NCBI RefSeq assembly: GCF_964188315.1
Contig: NC_135661.1
Location: forward strand, 81,716,001-81,780,000
Direction: 5' to 3'
Source: Podarcis muralis
Taxonomy: Eukaryota
DNA: 64,000 nt
Part shown: positions 1,339-63,969 of the stretch, in pieces
How positions within the stretch are numbered: the stretch's first letter is position 1
Layout: each line of letters begins with the position of its first letter
The notes under the pieces: generated by a model
Seen by the model: only the letters and a program-made list of their open reading frames with translations
What the model was told of the DNA's origin: nothing
Databases searched by the model: none
Program-made: the position numbers and the translations under genes

Positions 1339-1421
1339 CTGTCCAGAAAAGGGAACATCGTCAGGTAAAGGAGGTGCAGATACAACTCGGGCAGAAGTCT
1401 TAAATCTCAGCCGACAGGCCC
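1339..1421 (-). CDS. Gene E first cytoplasmic exon (WACRLRFKTSARVVSAPPLPDDVPFSGQ)
   Basis: Acceptor ctccttcag|GG, donor CAG|gtgaga; 83 nt, phase 1-0; alignable to cyt1 exons of genes A/B/C but TAT (Tyr) is replaced by CCT. Confidence 0.75.
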
Positions 1422-1844
1422 CTGAAGGAGGGAGAAAAGTAGGAATCAAACCTGAACATTCCCCCTACACAGACCTTTGCTTTTATGTTTTTTTCTTTAA
1501 ATTAAAGGATGATATTGGGGTAAAGAATTGAGATGATAGAAGCAGAACTGATTTGGAGCAGGATCTGTCAGAAAATTAAAAGGGGAATAAATGAATGGAA
1601 GAGGGACTTAACTGAAGAATTTTTGGGGGGTGTTTGACATGGATGGCTTGCATGCTCTAGTTACCGTATTTTTCTGTGTATAATATGCCCCCATGTATAA
1701 GTCGCCCCCTATTTTTGGGGACTCCAAATTGAGAAAATGGGGGGTTGATTGTATCCGTGTATACGACATCCTACAATTTTGAACATAATTATTAAATAAA
1801 ATAACCTAGTCTTATACATGGGAAAGTACAGTATCTCGTACTTG

Positions 1845-2356
1845 GGTTACTGCAATGTGCTCTACGTGGGGCTATCTTTGAAGGTGACTTGGAAACTACC
1901 AACTAATCCAGAATGTGGCAGCCAGACTGGTGACTGGGAGTGGCCACCGAGGCCATATTATACTGGTCCTTAAAGACCTACATTGGCTCCCAGTACGTTT
2001 CCGAGCACAATTCAAAGTGTTGGTGCTGACCTTTCAAGCCCCAAACGGCTTCAGCCCAGTATATCTGAAGGAACGTCTCCACCCCCATCATTCAGCCCGG
2101 ACACTGAGATCCAGCGCCGAGGGCCTTCTGGCGGTTCCCTCACTATGAGAAGTGAGGTTACAGGGAACCAGGCAGAGAGCCTTCTTGGTCGTGGAACACC
2201 CTCCCTTCAGATGTCAAGGAAATAAACAACTATCTGACTTTTAGAAGAGATCTGAAGTTTTTAATGTTTGAAGTTTTATCCTGTTTTTAGTCCTCTGTTG
2301 GGAGCCGCCCAGAGTGGCTGGGGAAACTCAGTCAGATGGGCGGGATGATGATGATG

Positions 2357-2395
<39 letters not shown>
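1845..2395 (+). mobile_element. L2 LINE 3' fragment with (AAT)n tail
   Basis: ORF LKDLHWLPVRFRAQFKVLVLTF typical of L2 3' ORF2; 3' end GGGAGCCGCCCAGAGTGGCTGGGG then microsatellite. Confidence 0.85.
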
Positions 2396-2549
2396 TGGCA
2401 TTTATGTCTAAGTTAGCACAAACACATTTTATGCACATTTGTTTCTGCAGACCCTCTGCCCCTGCCCTGTCCAGCAATACCCCTGGGCTCCAGTAGTTGG
2501 CGACAGGACCCAGGAATCTGAGGCTCCGCACTTCCAACATCTTACTCAC

Positions 2550-2645
2550 AGAATAAGACACAAAGCAGTGCTCCAAACAACGTCAGTGCAACCAGAGACC
2601 CAACGACAATCCGAGAAACGACTCCTGCTTCCAGCAGAGCAGAAT
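2550..2645 (-). CDS. Gene E transmembrane exon with Arg (DSALLEAGVVSRIVVGSLVALTLFGALLCVLF)
   Basis: Acceptor ttccag|AT, donor T|gtgagt; 96 nt, phase 1-1; hydrophobic, shares GSL core with TM exons of A and B. Confidence 0.8.
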
Positions 2646-3839
2646 CTGGAACCAGAAAGAAGGTTTTGAGGAACGCAGCAATGGCAGCAATAAGGACCAA
2701 CATTCATCTGGCTGACCGCCTCTTTTCAAACACATCAAGGCCTTTGAGGTGAATGGAGGAAAGCCAGACAACCCAGGCCATGCAATTTCCCACCCAGAGC
2801 AGGCGCTACCATGGATCTGTTCCTTAAGTGAAGGGTGGTAATAGGCAGTGGCTGAGTTTCCTTCCATCTGTGGACCCTTGTTAACGGAGAAATCTGAGGG
2901 CTCCCTTGGACAAAAAACCAAGGACACCAGCCAGGAATACCAGAGCAAAACAGCAGCCAGTAGGCTTGGTCTTTATTGAAGACTGTCGCGACAGGACTCC
3001 CACCTGCCACAAGGTGGAACAAGATGGAAGCCCTGAACAAAAGTTCCCCCAAACTTTTATTAGCTGCTAATCCCCACGTTACACCCCCCCAAACTACATC
3101 ACTCATACATCACGGTTACATCATGAAAAGAGAGGTCTGGTGGCAGTAATCTGAACATCCTGGACCCTGCCCCATGGTTCTCCTTGCCCTCCACCAAACA
3201 CCCATCAAGTGAAGCAAAAGAGATCTTTACATTTCCCTGTTTCCCAGCCAAGTTAATCACACCCTTTTGTCTTCATCTGGGTTTGTTATTTCTGGAATGG
3301 CTACCTGTCTGGCACTCAGGTATCAGGATGCCAGGGATTATCACTCAGGCAGAGGGGCTGCTGAGCAGCTGAGCTCACATGTCTATATGAATTTCTGAAG
3401 TTTTCCCAGTGAGCCAGTACATAGGAACATTTATCAGTGAATTGTTACATTTGGTATTGTGCAGCAGAGGCCCTTTGAACAGATAGGAAGAAACTGTGAG
3501 GAAGTGTTTTGCGGGGACAAATCACAAAAGTCACAAAAGCGATTGTGCTGATTTTGGTAGTGGGCTGCATGTGCATGATATCTGCTGGAGGGGCAACCCC
3601 CCAAAAAACCTATACATAAATTCCTGCAACACCCTGAGGACTAGTAATGAATAACCTGTTTGAGCAGAAACTCTTCCTTTCTTTTGGGTTTGCTGGTTCC
3701 ACCATTTTTATTATTAATCAATTAATTAAATTTGTTAACCACCCTTTATCCATAGATCTCAGGACGGTTCACAACATAAAATAACAATATAAAAAACCCA
3801 CAAATACATGATAGAAATAAGAACAACAAACTAATACAT

Positions 3840-3935
3840 ATGTCAGGAGTGCTCTGATGGTGTTTCCTGCTTGGCAGGGGGTTGGACTCGATGGCCCTTG
3901 TGGTCTATTCCAACGCTATGATTCTATGATTCTAA
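3840..3935 (+). mobile_element. CR1 LINE extreme 3' end
   Basis: TGTCAGGAGTGCTCTGATGG...GGACTCGATGGCC...(ATTCTATG)n, the same as the 3' ends of the CR1 copies at 20.3 kb and 31.9 kb. Confidence 0.8.
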
Positions 3936-4665
3936 TAATTTCCCCCCAACACATTTAAAAGGGCATCAGATGCAAATCAGCCAAAGGCCTGCAGGAAGAC
4001 AGACGTTTTTGCCTGGTGCCTAAAGGTGTATAATGAAGGCAGCAACTGGACTATTTCGGTTGGGGTCTTGGCCTGGGCATGAATCAAGCAAAAACTGAGG
4101 CTTGTGGTTGCCACGTGAGAGGGGTTTAATAAAGGGGAAGAGACCTTACCCTCAATCAAAAGGCCCATTTTATAGGGTTACCACCACCCAGGGGAGCGTC
4201 CAGACCCACCGTGTTGTGCTAGGAATTATAGAATTGCAGCAGGAACTCTTCTTAAAAGTAGCTGCCTTCAATACCTGAACCTAAACCTTCTTCTTCTTCT
4301 AATTCTCCATGATTTGCTTGCAGTTAAACGAACCCAGCAGTTATGACAGGACTTCTCATTGGAGACAGTTGTGCTGGGGGCTAGTTCATTCAACCCTCAG
4401 CAGAAATGCTCAGAGACCTAGCCATAAGCTGCTTAGAGGACACATTTGGAGGGATGAAAGGGAAGAAACTTCTAAAGGCACCAACGGGACCCCCTAAAAG
4501 ATGGGGGAAGGATCATGCCTGAGACCTCTAGGTTTGCACTCCCTGTTTCAAAACCCAGAGACCCTTCTGTTCTCAATGAATATTATTATTATTATTATTA
4601 ATAAATTTTATTTATACCCCGCCCTCCCCAGCCAAGGCTGGGCTCAGGGTGGCTAACAACCAATA

Positions 4666-4907
4666 CAGTGGTACCTCGGGTTAAGTACTTAGTTCGTTCT
4701 GGAGGTCCGTACTTAACCTGAAACTGTTCTTAACCTGAAGCACCACTTTAGCTAATGGGGCCTCCTGCTGCCGCTGTGCCGCCGGAGCACGATTTCTGTT
4801 CTCATCCTGAAGCGAAGTTCTTAACCTGAAGCACTATTTCTGGGTTAGCGAAGTCTGTAACCTGAAGCGTATGTAACCTGAAGCGTATGTAACCTGAGGT
4901 ACCACTG
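4666..4907. mobile_element. Tc1/mariner-type MITE
   Basis: TA|CAGTGGTACCTC...GAGGTACCACTG|TA terminal inverted repeats with TA TSD. Confidence 0.88.
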
Positions 4908-5072
4908 TAATAAAAACAAGTTGAATGAATACAACTTAAAAACAAGATTAAAATACAACATTAAAACATTAAATGTATAGGTTCCAGAGTCATTTGGCCC
5001 TCAAAGCTCAGCGGAGGAGGCCGATTTGGGCGCATAAAAGGTCAGAATGACTGGAGAACAAGCTCATCATAC

Positions 5073-5444
5073 CTGGGACGGTTATATTGATAGCCCCTAT
5101 TCTGTGTTCTAGAGGTCCTTCTGGTTCCAGTGTATAGGTTCCAGAGTCGCTTGGTGTTAAATCTGTGATACGAAGGGAACAGTCTCTTCTCCCAGTCTCC
5201 CTGTCAGTGAAGGCAGATCCGTTTTTCTGTGAAATCACTGGATCTAGGAAATAGGTGAAGATTCGATTTCCGTCAGCACTTGACCCTCGGTACCATTTGC
5301 AGCTACGAAGTGTGGTCACATCAATATCTCCTGGTGTTAATGTGACACTCTGTCCTTCTTGCAGTATTTCTGGTTCAACTTTGATAGGTATTCCAGTCTT
5401 GGCCTGGGCTTGAGTCCGGAGGAAGCAGAAACTCAGGATGGAGG
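5073..5444 (-). CDS. Gene E CEACAM-like N (IgV) domain exon
   Basis: ctgcag|CC...CCAG|gtatga; 372 nt, phase 1-1; ASILSFCFLRTQAQAKTG...EGQSVTL...SCKWYRG...NGSAFTDRETG..DCSLRITDL..DSGTYTL; lacks the B-F Cys pair like CEACAM N domains. Confidence 0.9.
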
Positions 5445-5499
5445 CTGCAGCATGAAGCGGGGGAAAGAAGAGCAAAAACACGTCCTCATATTATAATTT

Positions 5500-6010
5500 C
5501 TTTTCCTTTTGTACAATTTATTTATTTGGTTTTTCAGATTAAAATTTTACGGTCACACATCTGACATGCAGCATAAAAACAAGATTCCAAAGGATCTCCT
5601 GGAGTTTTCTCCTCCCCTTTGTGGGTCCTATTGTTAATCATTTCCTCCTGTATCTTGTATGATAATCCAAATCTTTCTTTTTTTGTTAGATCGTTTATTA
5701 ATTTTCCAATAAAAGACATCCAATTAACATATCAAATCATAATCCAAATCTTCTATCCCTCCATTGTGTCCAAGATTCACCAGTAAACTACAAGTGATAT
5801 TCCAATCCTACTAATGATTTTAACTGTTTACGATGATCTTTAAGACAAGTAATAAATTTTCCCCATTCCTTATTAAAATTTGGGTCTTCCTGATTTCTGA
5901 TTCTTCCGGTCATTTTAGCCATTTCGGCACAATCCTTCAACTTGATCTGCCATTCTTCTCTGGCAGGGACTTTCATTTTCTTTCCATCTCTTTCCATTAT
6001 AATTTCTTAG
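5500..6010 (-). mobile_element. L1-type LINE 3' fragment
   Basis: ORF EEWQIKLKDCAEMAKMTGRIRNQ, matching the ORF2 C-terminus of the other L1 fragments in the window. Confidence 0.75.
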
Positions 6011-6220
6011 TTTATATGTCACTAATATGCTAATATGTCACTATATGCTAAAATAGGCTTCTAAGTGGATTATAGATTATAAAAACAAATTGCACAAATA
6101 TTGAAATGTAAACATTCACAATTCAAGTACACAATAAAACAATTCCCTATGTGCATGTGTGTGTGTGGCTGTTGTTGTTATATTTATTATATTTATTTAT
6201 AACCCAGATTTTCCCCAGAC

Positions 6221-6467
6221 TGTTAAGTTGTGGGTGAACATATCAGACGACACAGCGATTCTTCAAACAGCTCTTGTTTATTCACAGGCCAGAACAGAAC
6301 TGAACTGAAGGGTTCAGTCAGCCTGCTTATATAGAGCTCCAGTACAACGTAACTGTAACAATTTTCTAAAACTATCCAATCACCGAACGTCACTTTCGAT
6401 CCCTTATTTGCATAACTATCTAAAGTATCCCCCTGTTGGCCCAGGGTGAGAACTTCAGTACATAACA
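6221..6467 (-). mobile_element. Solo LTR (247 bp)
   Basis: TG...CA ends, near-perfect 5-bp TSD CAGAC/CAGAT, AATAAA and TATA-like motifs on the minus strand. Confidence 0.7.
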
Positions 6468-6546
6468 CAGATGACAACTCAAAAGCTACAAACATGGGGG
6501 GGGGGGGAATCATTAAAAGATAATTAAATACACACACAAACACACA

Positions 6547-7330
6547 TGTGAGGGGTTCAGGGACAGAGGCACAGGTGAGGGAGGAGACGGAGAGCAAGGG
6601 GGAAGAATCCCAGGACAGCGAGGAAGAGGATGACAATGACTTGAGGGATTCCATGAGTCTTTCAAGTGAATCGGAGGATTCCCAGAAGGGGGCGCCTGTG
6701 GTCAGGCCAAGGGGAGTCACAGGGGGGACTCGTCAGGAGCAGGGGACCAGCAGGGGAACCCAAAGTGGGAGCTGGGAGTCGGGACCGGCTTCTCCGCCAG
6801 AGCGCAGTGAAGGGGGTGGAGATTCCAGTGTGACAGGGGAAGCAGGTCCGAAAGCAGAGAGGGAGGGAAGATCGGAGCAAGACATCCTCCCGGAAAGGGA
6901 GGGGAGTAGTGCAGGGAGTAGTGTAACTGTCAAGAGGAAGGTTAGAGGTTGCGAACGCGCGCCAAGTTCAAATGTGGAGGCGCGCGGAAGAACAGGGAGC
7001 CCGGAGGAGGAGCCAGGTCCCAAAGCACGCAGGAGGGGGGAAGAGCTGTCTGGGGATTCCGCGTCAGGGGAATCCAGGAGGGGCGAAACCCCAGGGGGCA
7101 GGAAGACCCTGCGGAAAAGGAAAGAAAGGAAGAGGTGGAGCAGCACAAGCCTCTTAAACTGGTGCAGAGGAGGGACTGACTCAGAGGGGACTTCAGCGGT
7201 CTAAGCGTAACAGACGTGGGGCTGCGCGCCTCGGCTGTGGAGCGTACAATACACTGCAATAAACATTTTTGTATATAAACTGGACTTGGCGTTGGTCTCT
7301 TGTGAGCTGGGACCTGAGGCAGCCCTGACA
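6547..7330 (+). mobile_element. Solo LTR (784 bp) containing a low-complexity 218-aa ORF
   Basis: TGT...ACA ends, perfect 5-bp TSD ACACA, AATAAA near 7258. Confidence 0.78.
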
Positions 7331-7934
7331 ACACATTTATGATTTATTAAAAATAGAGATAATAACAGTAAAAACATCACAGCACCAGCCCTTTCCTTAA
7401 GAATAGTCAGTTCCTAAAAGCATGTTGGAATAAGAAGGGAAGGACAAGGAAGAAACCGGTCTAACGTCTCTAGGAAAGGAGCTCCAAAGTTTGGGAGCAG
7501 TCACTGAGAAGGCCCTGTCCTACATCCCAACCAAGATTGGCTGTGAGGGGGACAGGAATGAGAAAAGGGCCTCCTCTAAAGGTTATGTTATGGTTTTTCA
7601 AAGTTATATGTAAACAACCCTGTGCTCTTCAGATGAAGAATGGTATATAATTTTTTATTATTATTAAAGTGATTGTGTGTATGAGTGTGTGTGTGTCCTG
7701 CTCACTGCTGGACTGCAGCCCCCAAGAACTTCCCAGAGTAGCTTAAGCAGTCAATCCCTCTTCACAGGCATCTCTGGGAACTGTAGTTTTGAGAGCGGAA
7801 ATAGTAGTCACCTGACCACTCTCGGCACCCTTAACAAACCACACCTCCCAGAATCCTTTGGGGGAAGCCATGATGGTTTAAAGTGGTATCACAGTGCCTT
7901 AAATGTATGTTGTGAACGTAGCCTATCACCCTTA

Positions 7935-8300
7935 AAAAGGTAAAAGGTAAAGGTACCCCTGCCCGTATGGGCCAGTCTTGCCAGACTCTAGGGTTGTGCG
8001 CCCATCTCACTTAAGAGGCCGGGGGCCAGCGCTGTCCGGAGACACTTCCGGGTCACGTGGCCAGCGTGACAAAGCTGCATCTGGCGAGCCAGAGCCGCAC
8101 ACGGAAACGCCGTTTACCTTCCCGCTAGAAAGCGGTCCCTATTTATCTACTTGCACCCGGGGGTGCTTTTGAACTGCTAGGTTGGCAGGCGCTGGGACCA
8201 AGCAACGGGAGCGCACCCCGCCGCGGGGATTCGAACCGCCGACCTTTCGATCGGCAAGCCCTAGGCGCTGAGGCTTTTACCCACAGCGCCACCCGCGTCA
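7935..8300 (-). mobile_element. Sauria SINE
   Basis: Reverse complement of the 825 copy; TSD CCTATCA/GCCCTTA. Confidence 0.92.
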
Positions 8301-8350
8301 CCTATCGCCCTTAGAGAGATCAAAATCTCTTTCCGTGCTATCAGATAGCA

Positions 8351-8356
<6 letters not shown>

Positions 8357-8413
<57 letters not shown>

Positions 8414-8955
8414 TTTTTATTTGTACCCCGCCAATCTGGCTGGGTTTCCCCAGCCACTCTGGGCGGCTTCCAACAAGGATTAAAAATACATCAAAATGTC
8501 ACACATTAAAAACTTCCCTGAACAGGGCTGCCTTCAGATGTCTTCTAAATGTCAGGTAGTTGTTTATCTCTTTGACATCTGGTGGGAGACGTTCCACAGG
8601 GCGGGTGCCACTACCGAGAAGGCCCTCTGCCTGGTTCCCTGTAGCTTAGCTTCTCGCAGTGAGGGAACCGCCAGAAGGCCCTCGGCGCTGGACCTCAGTG
8701 TCCGGGCAGAATGATGGGGGAGGAGACGCTCCTTCAGATATACTGGACCGAGGCTGTTTAGGGCTTTAAAGGTCAGCACCAACACTTTGAATTGTGCTCG
8801 GAAACTTACTGGGAGCCAATGTAGGTCTTTCAAGACTGGTGTTATGTGGTCTTGGCGGCCACTCCCAGTCAACAGTCTAGCTGCCGCATTCTGGATTAGT
8901 TGTAGTTTCCGGGTCATCTTCAAAGATAGCCCCACGTAGAGCGTATTGCAGTAAA
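8357..8955 (-). mobile_element. L2 LINE 3' fragment with (AAT)n
   Basis: ORF LQLIQNAAARLLTGSGRQDHITPVLKDLHWLPV. Confidence 0.88.
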
Positions 8956-9100
8956 ATGTTGGGAAATAGGTGGCTGGAGCTGTACAGTCAGCCACCAAAG
9001 ACTAGCCACCCTCTGGCAAAGGACAAATCGAAATGCAGCACCTATTTCCCCTCCCTCTTTGTGTCTCCTTCCTTCTATTTAGGGTCCCTATCCGTCTCAC

Positions 9101-9179
9101 CTTTGAAGAGTGTGGCCTGCCATGAGCCCTTCTTCCCCAGCGAAGCCCTAGCACACCACAGCGGCTTTTCCTGCCTCAT
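9101..9179 (-). CDS. Gene E leader exon (MRQEKPLWCARASLGKKGSWQATLFK)
   Basis: ATG at 9179, donor AAAG|gtgaga, phase 1; ends SWQATLF like the leaders of B (SWQMLLLA), C and D; downstream of the shared promoter/5'UTR motif at ~9215. Confidence 0.65.
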
Positions 9180-10403: not shown

Positions 10404-10523
10404 TCATTTCTTCTTGATTTCTGAGCATATTATGTTGCTTTCCAAAGGCCAGACGGCCGCTGGCTCTGGCTGTGGAGGGTGGTTGGCCTTGAAGGCTAGT
10501 GTTGAATATTGTATGTCTTCACC
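10404..10523 (-). CDS. Gene D terminal exon with ITIM (GEDIQYSTLAFKANHPPQPEPAAVWPLESNIICSEIKKK*)
   Basis: ttgcag|GGT, phase 0, 120 nt to TGA; IQYSTL fits ITIM; resembles the CEACAM1 last exon (VTYSTL...IIYSEVKK). Confidence 0.85.
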   Translation of the reverse strand, partial: GEDIQYSTLAFKANHPPQPEPAAVWPLESNIICSEIKKK

Positions 10524-10829
10524 CTGCAAGATATCATAAGAAGGAGTCAGTGGGACCAAGGGGAAGTTCAAAGGCATTGTGGTATTGGGGGCTGTAATGG
10601 GGCAGCACTTTTGAGTGTTTATTGCAAGGCCGTTCCCTGGATTTCTAGCTTTTGTTGAATTTTTCAAAAGCAAACACGATGACACAACAGAGCTCACAAC
10701 TTTCTACTTGCAGGGTTATAAGGGAAAGCATGCAATCAATAATCAACCTGTTATCCAGGAAACATCAAACTTGATCCCACCTTACAGTAATCCAGCCAGC
10801 GAGTGTAAAGGTGTCAGGATAACAGCCAA

Positions 10830-11720
10830 GCTCTAGATTCTTCCTTTTAAATATATGTTTAAATTTCACTTAAAAAACACAACAAACACATAAACTCAAC
10901 AAATTCATAGGTACATAGTATTATTGAATACATATATACTTCACACAACATCAATATTATGAATACCAGCATTGGTATTTGATTTAACATTTTTTCCGGT
11001 ACTTCTTTTGCAGATTGTATCAATGGTTCAGCACACAAAAAATGCAAAGGTGAAAGGGGGGGCCTCTGCTTCCTCAAAAATGATTTCAGTAATTTATTTA
11101 TTTTTGTTCGTTTATATATAAAACTGTGCATGGGTCTTCAGAAACAGCTTTGATATATTCTAAGAAAGGAACACCCGTATTTAATTTATCCAACAAGGAG
11201 TATGAATAATTACTTTCTATCCTATCAAAAGCTTTTTCAGCATCTAAGAAAACCAAAGCTATTTCTATTTCATTTATTAAATACAAGAATTTTCTTGCAT
11301 TAACTGATAGTAAACAACCTATAGTGACATCCATGGGTCTGGATATCTATACATTAAAATAACTTTAACCTTTTTGTGTACATTGGAGCAAGAATTCTGA
11401 AATCTTGGTTTAATGATGATATTGGTCTATAAGATTAGGGTAATGTCGGATATTTGTCTTTCCTATGAATTAAGGTTATTTTTTCATCTTTCCAAGATTC
11501 TTATATTACATTAGTTAGCTTACAATAGTTAAACAGCTTAATTCAACAGTACTGCTATCTGAAAATGTTTTTATAAAATTAGGCAGGTAAACCATCAAAG
11601 CCAGGTGAATTGTTGGTTTTCAGAGCTCTTGTAACATTTTGTATTTCTTGGGGATTATTCTCTATATTGAGCATTTGTCTGTCCTCAGTAAACGCTACAA
11701 GTTTTATTCCAAATAACATG
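10830..11720 (-). mobile_element. Degraded L1 ORF2 (RT) fragment
   Basis: ORF 11098..11334 contains IALVFLDAEKAFDRI, an L1 RT motif. Confidence 0.75.
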
Positions 11721-11970
11721 GGTGTCTTTATCCTGGGGTTGCATCAACTGTTATAGATTGGAAAATTGCTTTCCAAAGGTGGCCCACACTTTGAAGTTTG
11801 TTTATAAGTGACTTCAAAGGAACCTGCTTGCAAATGAAATTCATAGTCATTGTTATCATGTGATTGACATGTTGGTGACCTAGCCTACTTGGCAAACTTG
11901 GCCCAGGGGGGTTCATGGAGATAAAGATCTGGACTGCTGGGCTGAAGAGGTTCTCCACTCCTACTCTTAC

Positions 11971-11999
11971 TTCCTTTGCAGGAAGAAAGACATTCTCTG
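11971..11999 (-). CDS. Gene D small cytoplasmic exon (AENVFLPAKE), CEACAM1 exon-8-like
   Basis: ttgcag|CA...GAA|gtaaga; 29 nt, phase 1-0; links the exon-7-like exon to the ITIM exon in frame. Confidence 0.7.
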
Positions 12000-12088
12000 C
12001 TGCAACTCAACCCCTCTCCCGCTTCTAGACTTTGAATCAGAATGCTGAAGTCTGCATATATTAGGTACTGCCATTGTTCTATCCTTAC

Positions 12089-12135
12089 CAGTGTGGGTTT
12101 CTATTCTGTTCCTACCGATACACTGAAGCACTGGT
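12089..12135 (-). CDS. Gene D cytoplasmic exon 7b (PVLQCIGRNRIETHT)
   Basis: tttcag|A...G|gtaagg; 47 nt, phase 2-1. Confidence 0.7.
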
Positions 12136-14131: not shown

Positions 14132-14179
<48 letters not shown>

Positions 14180-52878: not shown

Positions 52879-53014
52879 CAGTCACCCCCAAACTCGGCCC
52901 TCCAGATGTTTTGGGACTACAACTCCCATCATCCCTAGCTAACAGGACCAGTGGTCAGGGATGATGGGAGTTGTAGTCCCAAAACATCTGGAGGGCCGAG
53001 TTTGGGGGTGACTG
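52879..53014. mobile_element. Palindromic hAT-type MITE
   Basis: Near-perfect hairpin with a perfect 8-bp TSD GTATAAGC. Confidence 0.9.
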
Positions 53015-53359
53015 GTATAAGCCCTTTTACTGTGTCTCATTTGAATGGAATCAGGGCCGTCTTAAGCATATGTGGTGCTGGAGTGGAAAGATCCGCCCGG
53101 TGCCCCCCCCCCAGGTTGCCCAGAGTTGTCGACCTTTTTTAGGGGGGGAACCCCAAAGTTGTTTTTAGGGTGGGCCGGTGAGGCGCGCACAGCAGAGTTG
53201 GCCAGCCGCCTCAGCAGCAATGGAGGAGCCTGAGGCGGCAGCAGTAGCAGCAGCAGAGCAAGGGGTGGGCACCTGGAGGGGCGGGCAAGCAGAGCCCAGC
53301 ACAACAACAGTCGAGTCCGAGGCAGCTGAGCGAAGCCGGGGACATCATGTGAGCAGCGT

Positions 53360-53969
53360 TGTGACGGCCTGGGCTTCAGGCTCAGAGGCTGAACCTGAGG
53401 AATCCCAGCCTGCACAGGAGTCCCCGCCTCCAGAACCAGCTGAGCCGGGGCTGGGGCCTGAGCCTGAAGGGTCCTCACCTGTGCTGGATCCTCAGGTGCA
53501 GGCACCAGCTGAGTCTGCTCTGGCTCCTGGGGTGATGGAGGACCCATTGCCTGCAGGTGCTCCACTCTCAGCCCCGTCAGAGGAAGCTGAGGTTGCCTCT
53601 GGGTCCGGTAACCCTCCAGCCTCTCCTGAGCTGCAGAGGCTCAGGGCAGAGAGGCGGAGGGAACTAAGTTCCCGCAGGAGGAGTGCTTGCCTCCAGGCCA
53701 GGAGAGGCGAGTCACCTGTGGACCGGGGCCACCCTATGCCTCGGGGCAGATAAAAGTCAGTCAGCCCCAGTCCCAGGTTGTGGGAGCAATGTTGTTGGTA
53801 GCCTGTTCCTGCCTGAACCCTGTCCTGCTCTTCTGCCAGAGTTCCTGACCCCACCCAACTCCCCGCCTTGGACCCAGCTACAGCTTTGACGGACAGCCTC
53901 CATACTGCACCATTGACCTTGGACTGGACTTGGACCTCGCCTCTCGGTTAGCCCCCCGGGACCAGCACA
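53360..53969 (+). mobile_element. Solo LTR in a gene A intron
   Basis: TG...CA ends; TSD AGCGT/AGTGT; carries a P/E/S-rich ORF. Confidence 0.7.
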
Positions 53970-54364
53970 AGTGTGCACTGGGTGGGCCTCTCGACAGCCT
54001 GCCAATCCCAGGCTCGCAGGAGGGTGGAGCTGGCAGCTGCCTCAGTGCCTCGCTCGCCTGCAGCAGAAGAGCTGTGGTGCTCTAATAGGCTCTGCTCCAC
54101 TTGGCGGCGTCTGTCGGCTCTTCCCAATCCAGACTCCAAATCTCAGCCCCGGACTCTCAGCCTGGCGCCCCTGAGAGATGGGGCCCGGGTGCCCCGCACC
54201 CCTAGCGCCTATGGGTAACACGGCCCTGCATGGAATGCAAATAAACTGCAAGCCCATGTAGATGCCGCTGCATTGATGAAGTGTGATAGCTGCCAAGGGG
54301 CTCCTGCCAACAACAGATATTTGGAACATATTTGACATTTGAAGCGCAAGGGATTTCCACTCAC

Positions 54365-54406
54365 CAGATATACATTGGCAGCCTCAGAGGAGCTTTCAGG
54401 CTCAAT
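54365..54406 (-). CDS. Gene A 42-nt exon (IEPESSSEAANVYL)
   Basis: ttgcag|ATT...CTG|gtgagt, phase 0-0. Confidence 0.85.
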
Positions 54407-54680
54407 CTGCAACAAAGAGAAAAAGATGGCAAAGATCATTCACCAGTCACAAAATTGTAGAGTTGGAAGGGGCTGTTATAAGAATTTGAGGTCTTGAATA
54501 TATGAATTAAATCTTCATAAATTTACAAGGCAAACACATACATAAGTATATAAACCACGTGTCTGAATTTCATCGGGCGCATCCCCCTCCCTGCCGCCTG
54601 AAAGGGTAAATTCAGATGAAATTGGGGAGGGGGGGATATGGGCTTGCATTTCTATGTCAATGGGCGCTCTGAAATAACTA

Positions 54681-54955
54681 CAGTGGTGCCCCGCAAGACG
54701 AATGCCTCGCAAGACGAAAAACTCGCTAGACGAAAGGGTTTTCCGTTCCGCAAGACGAATTTCCCTATGGGCTTGCTTCGCAAGACGAAACGTCTTGCGA
54801 GTTCTTGCGAGTTTGTTTCCTTTTTCTTAAAGGCGCTAAGCCGCTAAGCCGTTAATAGCCGCTAAGCCGCTAATAGCCGTGCTTCGCAAGAGGAAAAAAC
54901 CGCAAGACGAAGAGACTCGCGGAACGGATTAATTTCGTCTTGCGAGGCACCACTG
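54681..54955. mobile_element. Tc1/mariner-type MITE with internal CGCAAGACG repeats
   Basis: TA|CAGTGGTGCC...GGCACCACTG|TA. Confidence 0.85.
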
Positions 54956-55006
54956 TACATGCTTGAGTATTTATCTCATGACAAATACCCACCCCAAGTC
55001 ACTTAC

Positions 55007-55110
55007 CTCAGGCTTTCTCTGTCCTGGTGGAAGAACATTCTCATATATTTGAGGGGTGGGTGTGGCCGCAGAGGTTGTGGTAGAAGTTTTGTCTTTCCTA
55101 TGACGGACAC
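55007..55110 (-). CDS. Gene A first cytoplasmic exon (RVRHRKDKTSTTTSAATPTPQIYENVLPPGQRKPE)
   Basis: ctacag|GT...GAG|gtaagt; 104 nt, phase 1-0. Confidence 0.85.
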
Positions 55111-55549
55111 CTGTAGGCAGGAAAGTCCAGGAATAAAGTCTTAACATGGAACAGGATCGGCCTGCAACAGCAGTGTAACATCAAGCAATATTCAGCAAAA
55201 TGATTCCCTTACTCAGTTTTCTGTATTCTTATGCGTCTTGCATATTGTAAACCACCCCGTGATCTTTGGATGAAGGGTGATATATAACAACAACAACAAC
55301 AATAGGGCAATGCTATTGGAAAGAAGTGGGTCAAACTAATGGAGAGGACATAGAAGTGTTTAGGATAATTTAGGAAGTTGTTATATGGACCACGATTGGC
55401 CAGAATAGCAGGGCATTAAGGCCTCTATACCTGGCGAAACTGTCCAGCTATTCCACTAAGGTTTTTTTTTTAAAAAGTTGAATTTTCTGAGTTCTGAAAA
55501 CAACAACCCCCCAGTAACTGAATAAGCAATGCAAGAGGTGTGTTTGAAT

Positions 55550-55814
55550 GAAATGCAGCCCGGACACTGAGGTCCAGCGCCGAGGACCATCTGGCGGTTC
55601 CCTCACTACGAGAAGTGAGGTTACAGAGAACCAGGCAGAGGGCCTTCTCGGTAGTGGCACCCGCCCTGTGGAACGTCCTCCCATCAGATGTCAAGGAAAT
55701 AAACAACTATCTGACTTTTAGAAGACATCTGAAGGCAGCCTTTTTAATGTTTGATATTTTATCGCGTTTTTAATATTCTGTTGATAACCGCCCAGAGTGG
55801 CTGGGGAAACCCAG
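55550..55814 (+). mobile_element. L2 3' fragment running into the gap
   Basis: Standard L2 3' sequence ending GAGTGGCTGGGGAAACCCAG. Confidence 0.8.
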
Positions 55815-55951
55815 NNNNNNNNNNNNNNNNNNNNNNNNNNNNNNNNNNNNNNNNNNNNNNNNNNNNNNNNNNNNNNNNNNNNNNNNNNNNNNNNNNNNNN
55901 NNNNNNNNNNNNNNNNNNNNNNNNNNNNNNNNNNNNNNNNNNNNNNNNNNN
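55815..55951. other. Assembly gap (N run)
   Basis: 137 N inside the gene A TM-cyt1 intron. Confidence 0.99.
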
Positions 55952-56223
55952 ATTCCACAGAGTGGAAGCAACCTGGGTTCCTCATCTGCTTCCTGCCCCA
56001 TAGCAGGAAAAGCACCAAAACAGTCTGGAAGGTTCTAGTGGTTCGGCCTGTTGCCAGATGATGGACTGGCTGAGGACCCCAGGGGCTCAGAAGGGTCTTC
56101 CTTAGGCCAAACCCAGCTGTGCTGCCACTTCCCTTTAGTCTCTCAGGCAGCTGTTTCAGCAGTGTGTGGGTGCGCTGTGGCTTTTGAATGGGAGCCAAGC
56201 TTGTCTGTGTGGCCCCAATGGTT

Positions 56224-56224
<1 letters not shown>

Positions 56225-56263
<39 letters not shown>
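56225..56263. repeat. (GT)n microsatellite
   Basis: About 19 GT units. Confidence 0.95.
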
Positions 56264-56266
<3 letters not shown>

Positions 56267-56311
56267 AGGCCACCAGCAGCTCAATGAAGAGGGACCCTGA
56301 GCTATGCATAC

Positions 56312-56645
56312 GGTAACGGGACCCCTGAGCATTGGGTCCAGTCATGACCGACTCTGGGGTTGCGGCGCTCATTTTGCTGTATTGGCCGAGGGAGCCGGCG
56401 TACAGCTTCCGGGTCACGTGGCCAGCATGACTAAGCCGCTTCTGGCAAACCAGAGCTGCGCACGCAAATGCAATTTACCTTCCCTATTTATCTACTTGCA
56501 CTTTGACGTGCTTTCGAACTGCTAGGTTGGCAGGAACAGGGACCAAGAAACGGGAGCTCACCCCGTCATGGGGATTCAAACTGCCAACCTTCTGATCGGC
56601 AAGTCCTAGGCTCTGTGGTTTAACCCACAGCACCACCTGCATCCC
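56312..56645 (-). mobile_element. Sauria SINE
   Basis: TSD CTATGCATAC. Confidence 0.9.
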
Positions 56646-57124
56646 TTGAACTATGCATACCCTTCAACATTTGTCCATTGAAAATAGGAACATCCATTTC
56701 CATAATGGTAATTTTACTATTTATACCCCACCCATCTTACTGGGTTGCCCCAGCCACTCTGGGCAGCTTCCAACATATATAAAAAAACCCATAATAAAAC
56801 ATTAAACATAAAAAACCCTTTCCTATACAGGATTGCCTTCAGATGGCTCGGGGGGTCAGATAACTCTATACCCTCCAACATTTCTCTGATGAAAATAGGG
56901 ACAAACTAGTCCACATCCTCCAACATTTCTCCAATTTATTTATTATTTATATGCTGCCCATAAAACTTTAAAAAAAAAAAAAACAACACCATCCCTATAC
57001 AGGACTGCCTTGAGGTGTCTTCTAAAAGTTGTATAGTTACTTATCTCCTTGGCTCGGGGGTCGCATAACTCCACACCCTCCAATATTTCTCCGATGAAAA
57101 TAGAGACGTCCTAAGGAAAAGTGG

Positions 57125-57486
57125 GGGACGCGGGTGGCGCTGTGGGTAAAAGCCTCAGCGCCTAGGGCTTGCCGATCGAAAGGTTGGCGGTTCGAATCCC
57201 CGCGGCGGGGTGCGCTCCCGTTGCTCGGTCCCAGTGCCTGCCAACCTAGCAGTTCGAAAGCACCCCCGGGTGCAAGTAGATAAATAGGGACCGCTTACTG
57301 GCGGGAAGGTAAACGGCGTTCCGTGTGCTGCGCTGGCTCGCCAGATGCAGCTTGTCACGCTGGCCACGTGATCCGGAAGTGTCTGCGGACAGCGCTGGCC
57401 CCCGGCCTCTTAAGTGAGATGGGCACACAACCCTAGAGTCTGTCAAGACTGGCCCGTACGGGCAGGGGTACCTTTACCTTTACCTT
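57125..57486 (+). mobile_element. Sauria SINE
   Basis: TSD TAAGGAAAAGTGGGG. Confidence 0.93.
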
Positions 57487-57612
57487 TAAGGAAAAGTGGG
57501 GCATTCTGGGATCATATCAGAAATCGGGATGTCTTCTCTAAATCAGGGACGTCCCGGAAAATAGGGACACTTGGAGGGTCTGAACCATGGAGCCAGTGCT
57601 GGTGTTACTCAC

Positions 57613-57714
57613 GGAGGAAGACGTAAGTCAGGGTTCCCGTCAGCACCAATATCGCAGCCAGAGATCCGATAATGGTCCCAGCGAGGGCTCCAGCAGAACC
57701 GGAAGTAGGAGAAG
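57613..57714 (-). CDS. Gene A transmembrane exon (ASPTSGSAGALAGTIIGSLAAILVLTGTLTYVFL)
   Basis: ccttag|CT...C|gtgagt; 102 nt as in gene B (alternative in-frame acceptor at 57720). Confidence 0.87.
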
Positions 57715-57806
57715 CTAAGGCTAAGATGGGGAACACAAGCAGAGCTCCCAATCCTATTTAAAATAATTACCGTAATTTCTAATAATCCAATAATCTGCTG
57801 CTAATA

Positions 57807-57844
<38 letters not shown>

Positions 57845-58049
57845 TTTATACCCTGGCCATCTTCAATAGCCACCAAAATCTGACGCCTGAGGCAGATATT
57901 GTGCTTTCCCTAGCGCTAGACAAGGCAAACAACAAAAGGCTTTCATGTGTTCCAGGAGAGGAATCAGGAAGTCAACATCAGACAAGAGAAAGTCGAGAAT
58001 CCCAGCAGCTCCTCCCTCCAGCCTTGCTGGCTCTTCTGTTCAGCTATAA

Positions 58050-58298
58050 CACGGGTAGGCAAACTAAGGCCCGAGGGCCGGATCCGGCCCAATCGTGTTC
58101 TAAATCTGGCCAGCGGACAATCCAGGAATCAATGTGTTTTTGCATGAGTAGAATGTGTCCATTTATTTAAAATGCATCTCTGGGTTATTTGTGGGGCATA
58201 GGAATTTGTTCACCCCCCCCAAAAAAAATAGTCCGGCCCCCCACAAGGTCTGAGGGACAGTGGACCGGCCCCCTGCTGAAAAAATTTGCTGACCCCTG
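58050..58298. mobile_element. hAT-type non-autonomous element
   Basis: CACGGGTAGGCAAACT...TTTGCTGACCCCTG ends; ~8-bp TSD (A/T)GCTATAA. Confidence 0.75.
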
Positions 58299-58448
58299 TG
58301 CTATAACATTTCCTGCAACATTGAGTTAACAGGAAGGTAGACCTGTTTAGGGAAGCTTTTAATGTTTGATGTATTACAGTATTTTAATATTTTTTTGAAA
58401 GCCGCCTAGAGTGGCTGGGGAAGCCCAGCCAGATGGGTGGGGTATGTA

Positions 58449-58485
<37 letters not shown>

Positions 58486-58891
58486 GACCTGAAAACTGAG
58501 ATTATGGTAAAGGAGAGGAAAAAGGAAGGGAAAGAGACCTCCCCTTTGAGCAAAAGGCCCATTCTATGGAGTTGAAAAGAGAGCTTTCAGACTAGCTATC
58601 ACATTGTGCTGGGAAACTAAAAGCCGAAAAGAACCATCCCACAGCTGGAACCTAAAGGAAAACTTATTTTCCAAACCTTCATTATTTGCTTGTGATTACT
58701 GAACTCAGCAGTTGTGCCTGGGCTTCCCTAGGGCGGTAGATGTGCTGGGGGCAAGTTCATTGGAGGATATAATAATCATAATTCTAGCCAGGAACTGAAC
58801 CGAGGACACAACTTTGGAGGGATAAAAGCAGGTTACTTCTAAAGGCATCAAGTTCACCTCTTAAAGATGGGAAAGGAAGCGAGATTCATAC

Positions 58892-59263
58892 CTAAGACAG
58901 TTAGGTTTGCATTCCCTGTTTTGTGTATCACAGGTAAACCCACTGCCAATGTATACATTCCCGAGTCATTTAGCCTTAAAAGTGTGATGCGAAGGGAGAA
59001 AAATGGGTCTACAGTCTCCCTCCCTGTGAAGGCAGGTCCATTTAGCCGATCCTCAAATGGAGCTCTGGCATAGGTAAATATACGATTTTTGTTTTCAAGT
59101 GTCCCTCGAAACCAGGTGCAGCTGCGGTATTGCTTCAGATCAACACTTCCTGGTGTTAAGGTGACACTCTGTCCTTCTCTCAGCAAATTTGGGTCAACTG
59201 TGATGTGTATTCCGGTCTTGCCCTGGGCTTGAGTCAGCAGGAAACAAGAACTCAGGATGGAGG
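58892..59263 (-). CDS. Gene A CEACAM-like N (IgV) exon
   Basis: acacag|CC...TTAG|gtatga; 372 nt; REGQSVTLTPG..RSCTWFRG..NGPAFTGRET..FSLRI..DSGMYTL. Confidence 0.9.
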
Positions 59264-60386
59264 CTGTGTTGTGGAGAAGAAAACAAAAACACCTGTACTA
59301 GGCAAAAATATATACCGTATTTTTCGCTCTATAAGACGCACCAGACCACAAGACGCACCTAGTTTTTGGAGGAGGAAAACAAGAAAAACAATATTCTGAA
59401 TCCCAGAAGCCAGAACAGCAAGAGGGATCGCTGCGCAGTGAAAGCAGCAATCCCTCTTGCTGTTCTGGCTTCTGGGATAGCTGTGCAGCCTGCATTCGCT
59501 CCATAAGACACACACACATTTCCCCTAACTTTTTAGGAAGGAAAAAGTGAGTCTTATAGAGCAAAAAATATGGTATATATGCTGCTGCCAATAGTCATGA
59601 AATTTGATTCAGTTCACATGGAAATCAGTCTCTCAGATTTGCATGTCCCAAAACAGTACAATAATGAAAATAAAGACATCCTTCCAAATTCTCACTTTAC
59701 TGAATTTTATGATGTGGTTCCCCTACCAAGTTGAATATTGCGGAGAAAATTCACATAAATGTGAAATATGTTCTTAGAGGAACATAATATACAAAAGTGC
59801 ATTACATTAGAAGAACTTGCTTCCGAAAAGTGTGCGTTAGTCAAAACTGCACACAAAAGCATGTTTATTCAGAGAAATGCCCACTAATTTGCGGAACAAT
59901 TTCAACGAGCATTTAAAAATAAAATCACAAATTGCTTCAAAGTGCGGAGAACTGAGTTTGAGATTGGAAAAACGGGATAGGGAGAAAATCAAAACTGACC
60001 CCTACATGGAAGTACGTAAATTCCATTAAACTAAACAGGGCTTTCTTCTGAGTCAACATGCGTGGGAATACACCGTACATCTGTTTCTATGTTGCTTTTG
60101 TGTGTGTTCAACTGCATGCTTGCAAACTTCCTTCTTTCTGCATTGGTCTACAATTTTAAAAGAAACCACTTGTTGCTGTTATTGTTGTTGTTGTTGTTGT
60201 TGAGGATCCATGGGAAGGGATGTTGTCAAAGGGGTCTGCTCCCACTCCTTCTTCCCTCCTCTCTCTTATACAAATGGACACAGCCACAGGGAATGCAGCC
60301 ACAAAGAAAAAGGGAGACCTGTTGCGCTTCCTTTTCAGCACCTTGCCAAATGCCTAGGCTTTCTCTGACACCCCTGTTTGCCTCAC

Positions 60387-60423
60387 CTGCTAGGCTCCGA
60401 TGACGCTCCTGCCTCCTCCCCAT
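60387..60423 (-). CDS. Gene A short leader exon (MGRRQERHRSLA)
   Basis: acaATGG start, donor GCAG|gtgagg, 37 nt, phase 1; the only leader-type donor found upstream of the IgV exon. Confidence 0.65.
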
Positions 60424-61790: not shown

Positions 61791-62329
61791 CTCAACTGCA
61801 GGTGTATGACAAAGACTTTCTCATTCCAGCAGTAGTGTTCAGGGGTGTAGTGTGTGTGCATATAGTGTGAAAATATCATGGAAACATGGATTTTATTGGG
61901 GGGGGGGATACTTGAAAATGTGAACATTTGTCAAAACTATTTGGAAAAATGTGTATATCACATTAAATTTATTATATTTACATATATATAATGCAGGCGA
62001 ATTTTCATGAGGAATTTCCCTTTTCTTTCTTCCCCCCTCAGCATTAATCCTTTAGTCACACAAGATGCAATTCCAAGGATTTCTGCCTGGCCCTTCCAGG
62101 AGGAGTTTCCTTTGTGTCTCTGTCTCAGTATCCGCAAGTCTTTCCCAGCGTGAGAGTCCCTTGGGGACCAAGGCTGCTTCCTTTGTTCAGAACAAGGACT
62201 AGGATTTCCAGAAGGACCTGCCCTGCATTTACTCAGCACCATCTGAAAGGAAGAGATCGGATCAGGGAAGAGGCTTGAGGGCCCAGGAGAGGCCTCAGCA
62301 GCGGAGAGGAACTTGCTGGGTCCATGTCT

Positions 62330-62377
62330 TTATCTCTTTATCTCTTCGTAGACGGAAGGGCTTCTGGGCTGCAAGGT
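62330..62377 (-). CDS. Gene Z terminal exon, ITAM second half (TLQPRSPSVYEEIKR*)
   Basis: ctctttag|ACC, 48 nt to TAA; paralog of the A and B last exons. Confidence 0.85.
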   Translation of the reverse strand, partial: TLQPRSPSVYEEIKR

Positions 62378-62483
62378 CTAAAGAGAAAATGGAGATGGTC
62401 AGGTGGAAGCCACAGAGTCAAATCCATCTTTGCTTTCATTTGTTTTCCTGGCCAGCGTAAGAATACATTTATATTCTTGGAAT

Positions 62484-62829
62484 GGGACGCGGGTGGCGCT
62501 GTGGGTTAAACCACAGAGCCTAGGACTTGCCAATCAGAAGGTCGGAAGTTCGAATCCCCGTGACGGGGTGAGCTCCCGTTGCTCGGTCCCTGCTCCTGGC
62601 AACCTAGCAGTTCGAAAGCATGTCAAAGTGCAAGTAGATAAATAGATACCACTCCGGCGGGAAGGTAAACGGCGTTTCCGTGCACTGCTCTGGTTGCAAG
62701 AAGCGGCTTAGTCATGCTGGCCACATGACCCGGAAGCTGTATGCAGGCTCCCTCGGCCAATATGAGGGAGATGAGTGCCGCAACCCCAGAGTCGGCCGCG
62801 ACTGGACTTAATGGTCAGGGGTCCCTTTT
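62484..62829 (+). mobile_element. Sauria SINE in the gene Z last intron
   Basis: TSD TATTCTTGGAA; the homologous site in gene B (~37380) is empty. Confidence 0.92.
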
Positions 62830-63384
62830 TATTCTTGGAAGCAGCACAACTTGTAAGAAGAGAAGGAAATCAGAGCAAGTATCTTGAAGGCTTAAGGTCT
62901 ATACTTTCAGGGAACTTGGGCGTCCTCTGCCTGGAATTTGGATAATTAGGAATACAGGGCATGCCACTGTGAATTTAACGCGAAGGAAGGATTTCAGGTC
63001 CAGTTCCCGAAGGGCTTCTTTTGCAGTGTGAGCAGAGAAAAGCTTCATTTGCTGAAACACCCATTTCCACCTGACTCTACAACCCTTCAGGAGACTTGCA
63101 CACCTTTGCATCTGGCCATCTAGGTGTATACATTTCTGTTCTGGAGGGAGAAATCCCTGCTTGAAATCTGGGAGAGCAGCTACCATTCAATGTAGGCTTT
63201 ACTCGGCTTGAGAGATTAAAGGGGTGACTTGGTATTCGGCCACTTTCTGTGTTCTGTTGGGTAGGTACATGAGGAAGACAATTGCCCATCAGGCCCTAAA
63301 ATGTACGAGGCCATCTTAAGGCCAGCTTTCTGAGTTGTGTCTGTAACCCTGGGTGTGAGAGCCGCTGGTCGGCTCTTGTTAATA

Positions 63385-63869
63385 CAGTGGTACCTTGGTT
63401 CTCAAACCAAAGTCTGTTCCCAAACCAAAGCGTTCCAAAACAAAGGCACGCTTTCCCATAGTAAGTAATGCAAAATGGATTAAGACATTCCAGACTTTAC
63501 AAACAACCCCATTAAACAACAATTTAACATGAATTTTACTATCTAACGAGACCATTGATCCATAAAATGAAAGCAATGAACAATGCACTACAGTCACATA
63601 ATCAGTAGCTGAACTGTGTTCCACAGTCACCAAAACAAAACAAAAGAGCCGCAAAATTAAAAACGCAAAATAAATAGTAAAAACAGACAGACCTCAGCAT
63701 AACACTCAAAACGGAAGTGTGGCACTCAAATCAGAAGTGTAACACTCAAAACGGAGCATATTTGGCTTCCGAAAAACATTCGTAAACCAGAACACTTACT
63801 TCTGGGTTTGCAGTGTTTGGGTTCCAACTTGCTTGAGTACCAAGGCGTTTGAGAACCAAGGCACCACTG
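63385..63869. mobile_element. Tc1/mariner-type non-autonomous element
   Basis: TA|CAGTGGTACCTTGGTTCTCAAAC...GTTTGAGAACCAAGGCACCACTG|TA. Confidence 0.88.
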
Positions 63870-63927
63870 TAACAGATATTTTGTCATATTTGGCATTTCC
63901 AAACATTCTGAAGCACAAAGGACTCAC

Positions 63928-63969
63928 CTCATATGTGTTGGCAGCGCTGGAGGAATTTTCAGGATGAAC
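63928..63969 (-). CDS. Gene Z 42-nt exon (VHPENSSSAANTYE)
   Basis: acccag|GTT...GAG|gtgagt; the rest of the gene lies beyond the window. Confidence 0.85.

Follow-up and report, generated by a model that had tools for sequence, protein, structure and literature searches.

The DNA analysed here is a stretch of 64,000 nucleotides (nt) from the common wall lizard Podarcis muralis (assembly GCF_964188315.1, contig NC_135661.1, positions 81,716,001 to 81,780,000; hereafter the window, numbered from its first letter), in which six CEACAM1-like units, termed Z, A, B, C, D and E, lie on the same (minus) strand. The window is very probably part of the P. muralis CEACAM locus, a tandem CEACAM1-like array produced by repeated duplication, in which two of the six units, genes A and B, are clearly intact and encode type I membrane receptors combining a CEACAM N domain with a cytoplasmic immunoreceptor tyrosine-based activation motif (ITAM) of their own. 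The initial annotation had described six tandem minus-strand genes with consistent phases; all six are present at the coordinates given, its outer limits (1339 and 63969) fall exactly on exon boundaries, and A and B are complete and open, but the N exon of gene C is dead, gene D has no ATG, and genes Z and E are cut by the window. The units and their exons are listed below (Ig, immunoglobulin; N, the CEACAM-type IgV exon; C2, the IgC2 exon; TM, transmembrane exon; cyt1 to cyt3, cytoplasmic exons; aa, amino acids).

62330..63969, minus strand: gene Z (3' part only), cyt2 63969-63928, cyt3 62377-62330; the upstream exons lie past the window end
52559..60423, minus strand: gene A, complete, IgV-TM-ITAM, 234 aa, canonical splice sites; leader 60423-60387, N 59263-58892, TM 57714-57613, cyt1 55110-55007 (YENV), cyt2 54406-54365, cyt3 52606-52559
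37226..48788, minus strand: gene B, complete, IgV-IgC2-TM-ITAM, 322 aa, canonical splice sites and consistent phases; leader 48788-48743, N 44594-44232, C2 43524-43252, TM 41310-41209, cyt1 38998-38904 (YEND), cyt2 38058-38017, cyt3 37273-37226
25210..31587, minus strand: gene C; leader 31587-31527, TM 27120-27022, cyt1 26608-26526 (YENI), cyt2 25580-25539, cyt3 25299-25210
28990..29769, minus strand: N pseudo-exon of gene C; WYRG lost, insertion of ~400 nt, 9-residue deletion, in-frame stop
10404..18513, minus strand: gene D; leader-like exon ~18513-18432 (no ATG), N 16390-16019, TM 13977-13857, 32-nt exon 12505-12474, last exon 10523-10404
12135-12089, minus strand: duplicated exon copy of gene D, 47 nt, in-frame TAG
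1339..9179, minus strand: gene E (5' part); leader 9179-9101, N 5444-5073, TM 2645-2550 with an Arg, cyt1 1421-1339; the remaining exons lie outside the window
55815-55951, no strand: assembly gap within the gene A intron that runs from the TM exon end (57613) to the cyt1 start (55110)

Exon architecture and ITAM tails

A tblastn search with the Ig exons visible as open reading frames (ORFs) located five CEACAM-type N exons, all on the minus strand (those of A, B, C, D and E listed above, with that of C at ~29769-28990), and a single IgC2 exon, in gene B; further queries with the B C2 exon and with the D.G.Y / F-strand motif returned nothing in the window beyond this C2 exon and a relic N fragment. 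Four of the N exons are open, 363-372 nt in length and in phase 1, with borders CAG/CC... and ...G/GTATG (the slash marks the exon edge). TM exons were located by hydropathy, cyt1 exons by phase-constrained enumeration, and leaders from orthologous proteins and sequence patterns; all modelled exons have an AG acceptor preceded by a pyrimidine tract and a donor of the form GTGAGx, GTAAGx or GTATGx. The leader peptide is divided between exon 1 and the N exon, after W..LLLA-G, with leader exons ending ...GCA G/GTGAG, and phase-1 introns border every Ig exon, the N, C2 and TM exons all being entered in phase 1 as in the CEACAM family. Comparison of exons with their flanks among Z, A and B gave no exon-specific conservation signal, because the duplicates are young and the flanks are conserved too.

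The tails of A, B and C are encoded by three exons (cyt1 of 83-104 nt, cyt2 of 42 nt and cyt3 of 48-90 nt), which is the arrangement of reptile CEACAM1-like (CEACAM1L) genes, and the ITAMs of Z, A, B and C are all interrupted by a phase-0 intron after Y-x, such that a 42-nt exon ending ...Y-x/GT precedes, by 0.2-1.8 kb, a last exon with x-L at its start and Y-x-x-I/L within it. When cyt2 is joined to cyt3, the motifs read YETL-x7-YEEI in Z, YLDL-x7-YEEI in A, YETL-x7-YEEI in B and YESL-x7-YNEL in C, each of which conforms to the canonical ITAM definition (YxxL/I, 6-8 residues, YxxL/I) and bears out the four YxxL-x7-YxxI/L motifs assigned to these genes in the initial annotation. A contiguous six-frame ITAM scan of the window gave a sole match, YDILQGEDIQYSTL, at the boundary of the last exon of gene D, which was rejected as a coding ITAM because it straddles the acceptor.

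This organization agrees with a recent survey of more than 100 reptile species, in which the CEACAM locus of the common wall lizard was mapped (Zimmermann and Kammerer, Res Sq preprint, June 2026, PMC13278318). The reptile locus, which lies between TOMM40 and LIPE (as stated for the common wall lizard) and is syntenic with mammalian CEACAM loci, includes in this species a CEACAM1 with up to 16 IgC domains and a CEACAM1/CEACAM1L1 decoy pair, together with CEACAM1-like genes that vary in number and have ITAM tails in three exons and an extra upstream tyrosine motif (PMC13278318). The window contains CEACAM-like genes exclusively, and its units share with these CEACAM1L genes the species and the type of locus, the plan of an N domain followed by 0 to n IgC domains, a TM segment and a three-exon ITAM tail (in mammals the tail occupies four exons), the upstream tyrosine motif, and the occurrence of pseudogenes with N-exon defects; the upstream tyrosine of gene B lies 25 residues before the ITAM, in comparison with 17-21 in most species (PMC13278318).

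Gene A has splice phases 0/1/1/1/0/0 and the same architecture as a 243-aa protein (P0064), and gene B aligns end to end with an independent RefSeq model from Zootoca, XP_034977030 (P0153), over residues 1-321 of 322 at 63% identity, its C2 exon having CEA as best match (1.7e-26). For gene Z, the tail is 90% identical to Zootoca XP_034977030/032 (P0153/P0027), and, judged by this tail, Z is orthologous to the Zootoca gene that has the N domain nearest to CEACAM1. The Zootoca ortholog of B/Z (P0027/P0153) has a Glu within the TM helix (..GTVIESLAVIL..), at a position where Podarcis A and B have Gly.

Several points weigh against this picture of A and B as intact receptors of a CEACAM array. The splice junctions are predicted from consensus sites, phases and agreement with public gene models, while the ligands, the expressing cell types and signalling through the ITAM are proposed by analogy. 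The leader of gene A (MGRRQERHRSLA) is short and without clear homology; it was located by a donor-and-ORF pattern, and a search for it by DNA similarity to the other leaders found nothing. In addition, the N domain of A (58892-59263) is 91-92% identical to P0023, a P. muralis UniRef entry from an older assembly (A0A670ISW7), compared with 100% for gene D against the current RefSeq protein and 98% for gene E against P0002, which leaves the assignment of A as an allele or a paralog uncertain. The difference suggests either strong allelic diversity of the A N domain or a further paralog.

Two runs of N occur in the window (86-285 and 55815-55951), and the public record used for comparison (OZ076960.1 of assembly GCA_964188315.1, positions 81,718,101-81,744,981, equal to window 2101-28981; 26,881 bases, 100% identity; found via the public protein P0025) spans neither of them. 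The gap in gene A is adjoined on its low side by a truncated interspersed-repeat copy (55553-55814). Gene A leaves the TM exon in phase 1 and enters cyt1 in phase 1, and its gapless paralog B has the same two exons in the same two phases, with no extra segment at this point in the relatives of A or B. Since the frame is carried by the splice phases, and neither paralog B nor the relatives show an extra segment, the gap affects no reading frame, and no exon is expected to be hidden within it. A scan for promoters and terminators of prokaryote type around the gap was uninformative.

Family assignment and cysteines of the N domains

The N domains match the Pfam V-set, and their best matches among solved structures (25-28 of them) are all CEACAM N domains (CEACAM3, 5, 6, 1, 7 and 8, with E ~1e-6), followed by antibody, VNAR (shark antigen-receptor) and SIRP domains at 1e-4 or worse and by sialoadhesin at 0.014. 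A profile search with the N domain against 1.84 billion representative proteins returned 68 proteins at E < 1e-30. Among 151 proteins (the best 150 together with earlier matches), many have ITAM tails of the same form and many have the CEACAM1 tail ...IQYSTLAF...IIYSEIKKK, and ten top matches checked for their names are either CEACAM-like, in Podarcis, Zootoca and Rhineura, or unnamed proteins with Ig domains, in the same lizards and in a sea turtle.

The Pfam match is to a generic V-set only, and identity to the mammalian CEACAM N domains is low (E ~1e-6), as would also be seen if the genes belonged to another IgV family, such as CD2/SLAM, Siglec, nectin or SIRP, that happened to lack the disulfide between strands B and F. 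Such an origin is highly improbable in view of the solved-structure matches, in which CEACAM N domains take all of the 25-28 top places before any other family appears, the CEACAM1-like tail and leader of gene D, the S-type/L-type tail logic with a 32-nt exon as in CEACAM1, the CEACAM-like names of the orthologs, and the synteny of the wall lizard locus with mammalian CEACAM loci (PMC13278318). Membership of the CEACAM family, which the initial annotation had proposed, is thus upheld by comparison of the N domains with other Ig families, as well as by the ortholog names and by the tail of gene D, at 89% identity to CEACAM1. The lack of the B-F disulfide in CEACAM N domains, which it had taken as established, also holds: the core positions of the B and F strands are never Cys in 188 aligned N domains of the family, and the F strand reads Y-T-L as in CEACAM1/3/5.

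Two alternative cysteines are found in many N domains of reptiles and other non-mammals, one located two residues before the strand-C Trp and the other in the strand-E 'C-S-L' (columns 48 and 88 of alignment A1). Of the 188 N domains, 121 have the two together, 57 have neither and 10 have one only (Fisher p = 4e-36, not corrected for relatedness); within the window, the N domains of E (5444-5073) and B (44594-44232) have both, that of A has one and that of D none. Their covariation is consistent with an alternative inter-sheet disulfide, which these residues may form.

Decayed units, the transmembrane arginine and the surrounding sequence

The ligand-binding exon of gene C is lost. A cryptic GTACTG donor in phase 1 closes off the initial 114 nt of the N pseudo-exon (29769-29656), and the leader, TM, cyt1, cyt2 and cyt3 exons are all open with canonical sites, such that gene C could conceivably be alive as an Ig-less, ITAM-bearing membrane protein acting like a signalling adaptor. 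In the public annotation, the gene C stop codon (25210) is also the end of a 202-aa product that has no Pfam domain, and a leader joined to the 114-nt N fragment, a 120-nt exon (27398-27279), TM and cyt1-3 amounts to 609 nt, which fits that length, although this fit is arithmetic only, by length and not by sequence. The loss of the N exon may also be recent, with the 3' exons merely still intact, and the specialists' rule defines pseudogenes by defective N exons and counts N-exon loss as inactivation of the gene, because the N exon encodes the end of the signal peptide (PMC13278318). We consider a living, Ig-less gene C doubtful, and hold to loss of the ligand-binding exon.

Gene D, now decayed, is a partial duplicate derived from CEACAM1, as shown by its last exon, which shares 89% identity with the P. 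muralis CEACAM1 tail (P0034), and by its leader-like exon, at 61% identity to the leader of CEACAM1. CEACAM1 has a long tail with immunoreceptor tyrosine-based inhibitory and switch motifs (ITIM/ITSM), and a short tail obtained by skipping of a 53-nt exon; the leader, TM, 32-nt and last exons of gene D are homologous to those of the true P. muralis CEACAM1 (P0033/P0034). Compared with CEACAM1, however, gene D lacks the ATG, the IgC exons (none was found for it in the Ig-exon searches of the window) and the 53-nt exon, its 32-nt exon is duplicated with one copy broken, and the distal tyrosine of its last exon (IQYSTL ... IICSEI) is replaced by Cys where CEACAM1 has Tyr. In the leader-homologous exon, the codons ATA, TTG and GTG stand in place of ATG, as is likewise the case in P. 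raffonei. Enumeration of all phase-compatible exons between the TM and 32-nt exons, and tblastn with the P0034 and P0032 tails, failed to find a 53-nt exon, yielding only implausible candidates embedded in repeats.

The absence of this exon bears on the reading frame of the tail, as the true CEACAM1 (P0034, P0032) reads the 32-nt exon as GV.DTKPT in a frame set by the preceding 53-nt exon. In gene D, the 32-nt exon and its flanks are tandemly duplicated (11967-12636, minus strand), with a second copy of 47 nt that contains a TAG, and an in-frame path to the ITIM exon requires a 20-nt micro-exon with a weak GTAGGA donor inside this 47-nt duplicate. The RefSeq protein for the gene, XP_077787047.1, is labelled 'partial', stops at the TAG and leaves out the ITIM exon. 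Gene D is most likely a pseudogene or at best the source of a short-tailed product, and of the CEACAM1-like ITIM tail ascribed to it in the initial annotation, the motif IQYSTL is indeed present in the last exon (10523-10404), but the start codon, the 53-nt exon, the distal tyrosine and a RefSeq model that reaches the ITIM exon are all wanting.

A working gene D, serving as a second, inhibitory CEACAM1 with an ITIM tail and pairing with the ITAM genes of the window, is improbable. Its N exon is open with good splice sites in both P. muralis and P. raffonei, yet in the same two species the leader has no ATG; the ITIM IQYSTL is intact, yet the distal Tyr of CEACAM1 has become Cys; and the path from TM through 32 nt and 20 nt to the last exon is in frame, yet it depends on the weak donor within the TAG-bearing duplicate, where RefSeq stops, and no 53-nt exon, which sets the frame in CEACAM1, was found by enumeration or tblastn. 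Its N domain is also the least similar of those in the window (46-48% to A, B and E).

If the TM exon of gene D were joined directly to the last exon (13857/10523 junction), the product would read AVKTYNIQH, and P. muralis CEACAM1 (P0033) shares the ending ..K(R/T)YNIQH with a distant relative (P0148); the tail of the short isoform thus seems to be conserved in sequence, beyond what a by-product of a frame shift would be. Around the leader-like exon, a GC-rich stretch (18200-19300) with a long stop-free frame and no ATG may be the CpG-island remnant of a CEACAM1-type promoter. Two alternative leaders for gene D were rejected: MASLFHQLWLTLTQPCVFAV (17712-17652), in view of the exon near 18.45 kb that is homologous to the CEACAM1 leader, and MKSPWQAALLLA near 18.98 kb, which adjoins a repeat end and is out of frame in P. 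muralis.

Gene E represents an older lineage, marked by an arginine in the TM segment and by an ITAM tail that is degenerating. It matches, through cyt1 and at 98% identity, a P. muralis protein named CEACAM1 (P0002), and the Arg that the initial annotation placed in its TM segment is confirmed within the exon 2645-2550, in the sequence VVSRIVVGSL, at a position occupied by Gly in A and B; the residue is kept in Zootoca and Rhineura. The presence of the lineage in Podarcis, Zootoca and Rhineura points to an origin that is probably no younger than the lacertid-amphisbaenian ancestor. The tail is derived from an ITAM tail, as judged by alignment with A, B and C and by the orthologs: the YEN tyrosine has been lost, the orthologs retain the proximal YQAL, and the distal ITAM motif is degenerate (CNQP in P. 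muralis, YNQP in Zootoca). In the orthologs, a tail of ~60 aa with YQAL accompanies the conserved TM Arg. The Arg of the E lineage lies two residues upstream of the position of the TM Glu in the Zootoca B/Z ortholog. The gene E intron just downstream of its N exon also contains a remnant N exon reduced to its 3' half (..PNDSGTYTF.., ..GSANLEVSG..; 4500-5000, minus strand), which is similar to 58669-58921.

The arginine raises the question of whether gene E is an activating receptor coupled to an adaptor, the TM Arg docking an ITAM adaptor of the FcR-gamma/DAP12 type, a mode undescribed for CEACAMs, whose activating members bear an ITAM of their own rather than a charged TM residue (PMC2110893). 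Ig receptors known to be adaptor-coupled (activating KIR, LILRA/PIR-A, OSCAR and Fc-alpha-RI) have a basic TM residue, which gene E resembles in its Arg in the outer third of the TM helix. This Arg, which stands where A and B have Gly, is conserved across Podarcis, Zootoca and the amphisbaenian Rhineura, and both the loss of the YEN tyrosine and the degenerate distal ITAM tyrosine are in keeping with signalling through a partner. Those receptors, however, have very short tails without tyrosine motifs, in contrast to the long, ITAM-derived tail of the E lineage (~60 aa in the orthologs), which keeps the proximal YQAL and may signal by itself like a hemITAM; moreover, with just 4-5 residues of helix before it, the Arg could reach the membrane surface by snorkelling. 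Adaptor coupling of gene E is accordingly unlikely, and slightly more so the evolutionary reading of it, namely that the E lineage represents CEACAMs that switched from signalling through their own ITAM to coupling with an ITAM adaptor via the conserved Arg, which would be a mode undescribed for the family. A more speculative variant would have gene E pair with a paralog bearing an acidic TM residue (cf. the Glu of the Zootoca B/Z ortholog).

The introns and spacers of the window are full of copies resembling short interspersed elements (SINEs), and reverse-transcriptase fragments of long interspersed elements (LINEs) occur at 39744-40751, 21997-22416 and 49381-49698 on the minus strand and at 31877-32452 and 19900-20623 on the plus strand, among them one open ORF of 335 aa; several of the copies are bordered by long (A)n, (T)n or (CTT)-like tracts. 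Among the public gene calls on window 2101-28981 is a 1857-aa product with numerous Ig domains, which ranges over the entire stretch and past both ends; it could represent either the CEACAM1 of 16 IgC domains, interrupted by a very long intron, or a chimeric read-through model. The Logan contig L001, considered as a transcript, was rejected as genomic sequence.

Receptor pairing and biological meaning

CEACAM clusters are a textbook example of a host-pathogen arms race, in which microbes exploit the inhibitory CEACAM1 and are themselves countered by decoys with an ITAM. In the case of A, B and Z, the N domain would bind a ligand, possibly a microbial adhesin, upon which Src-family kinases would phosphorylate both ITAM tyrosines (YxxL-x7-YEEI) and the upstream YEN(V/D) site, and proteins with Syk-type tandem SH2 domains and Grb2-type SH2 domains would be recruited, leading to uptake or activation; this mechanism follows that proposed for human CEACAM3 and for the reptile CEACAM1-like 'decoy' receptors. 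Human CEACAM3, the granulocyte decoy receptor, has the same layout as gene A (a single N domain, a TM segment and a cytoplasmic motif of ITAM type), although its motif is ITAM-like in comparison with the canonical YxxL-x7-YxxI of gene A, and its N domain is the best or second-best solved-structure match of the lizard N domains. The two genes arose independently, and the N domain of A is only 54% identical to that of lizard CEACAM1, so that any decoy relation of A would be conjectural.

Among A, B, D and E, the N domains share 46-57% identity with one another, and 39-54% with the N domain of P. muralis CEACAM1. The inhibitory/activating pairing that the initial annotation had placed within the window, where ITIM and ITAM members would have similar N domains, finds no support there, as the N domain of D is only 46-48% identical to those of A, B and E and the real CEACAM1 is located elsewhere. 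A likely partner of CEACAM1 is gene Z, because the Zootoca receptor with a Z-like tail (P0153, 90% identity) has an N domain 76% identical to that of P. muralis CEACAM1; the N exon of Z itself lies past the window end. The CEACAM paired receptors of Xenopus likewise form an expanded non-mammalian cluster with ITAM and ITIM members, but their pairing was shown by co-evolving N domains (PMC5112662), whereas the lizard window contains no ITIM/ITAM pair with similar N domains. Nor do the three signalling modes of the initial annotation amount to a working set, given that the ITIM gene D looks non-functional, with a RefSeq model that stops before the ITIM exon, and that the tail of E is ITAM-derived and not of the short adaptor type. 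Its view of a cluster skewed toward activating (ITAM) members and evolving by birth and death is, on the other hand, well founded, as seen in the dead N exon of C, the relic N fragment at ~4500-5000 and the decayed gene D.

Clusters of CEACAM genes from lizards would have filled a gap, which has since been closed by the 2026 preprint (PMC13278318); the wall lizard locus is already annotated, the reptile CEACAM families, this locus included, are described in that preprint, and the novelty of the finding had been overrated. The present analysis contributes an exon-by-exon map of the six units, drawn on the new P. muralis assembly, with A and B as intact genes, Z and E cut by the window and C and D decayed. 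The conserved TM arginine of the E lineage and the covarying, non-canonical pair of cysteines in the N domain, neither of which is mentioned in the main text of the preprint (PMC13278318), are minor leads that go beyond it.

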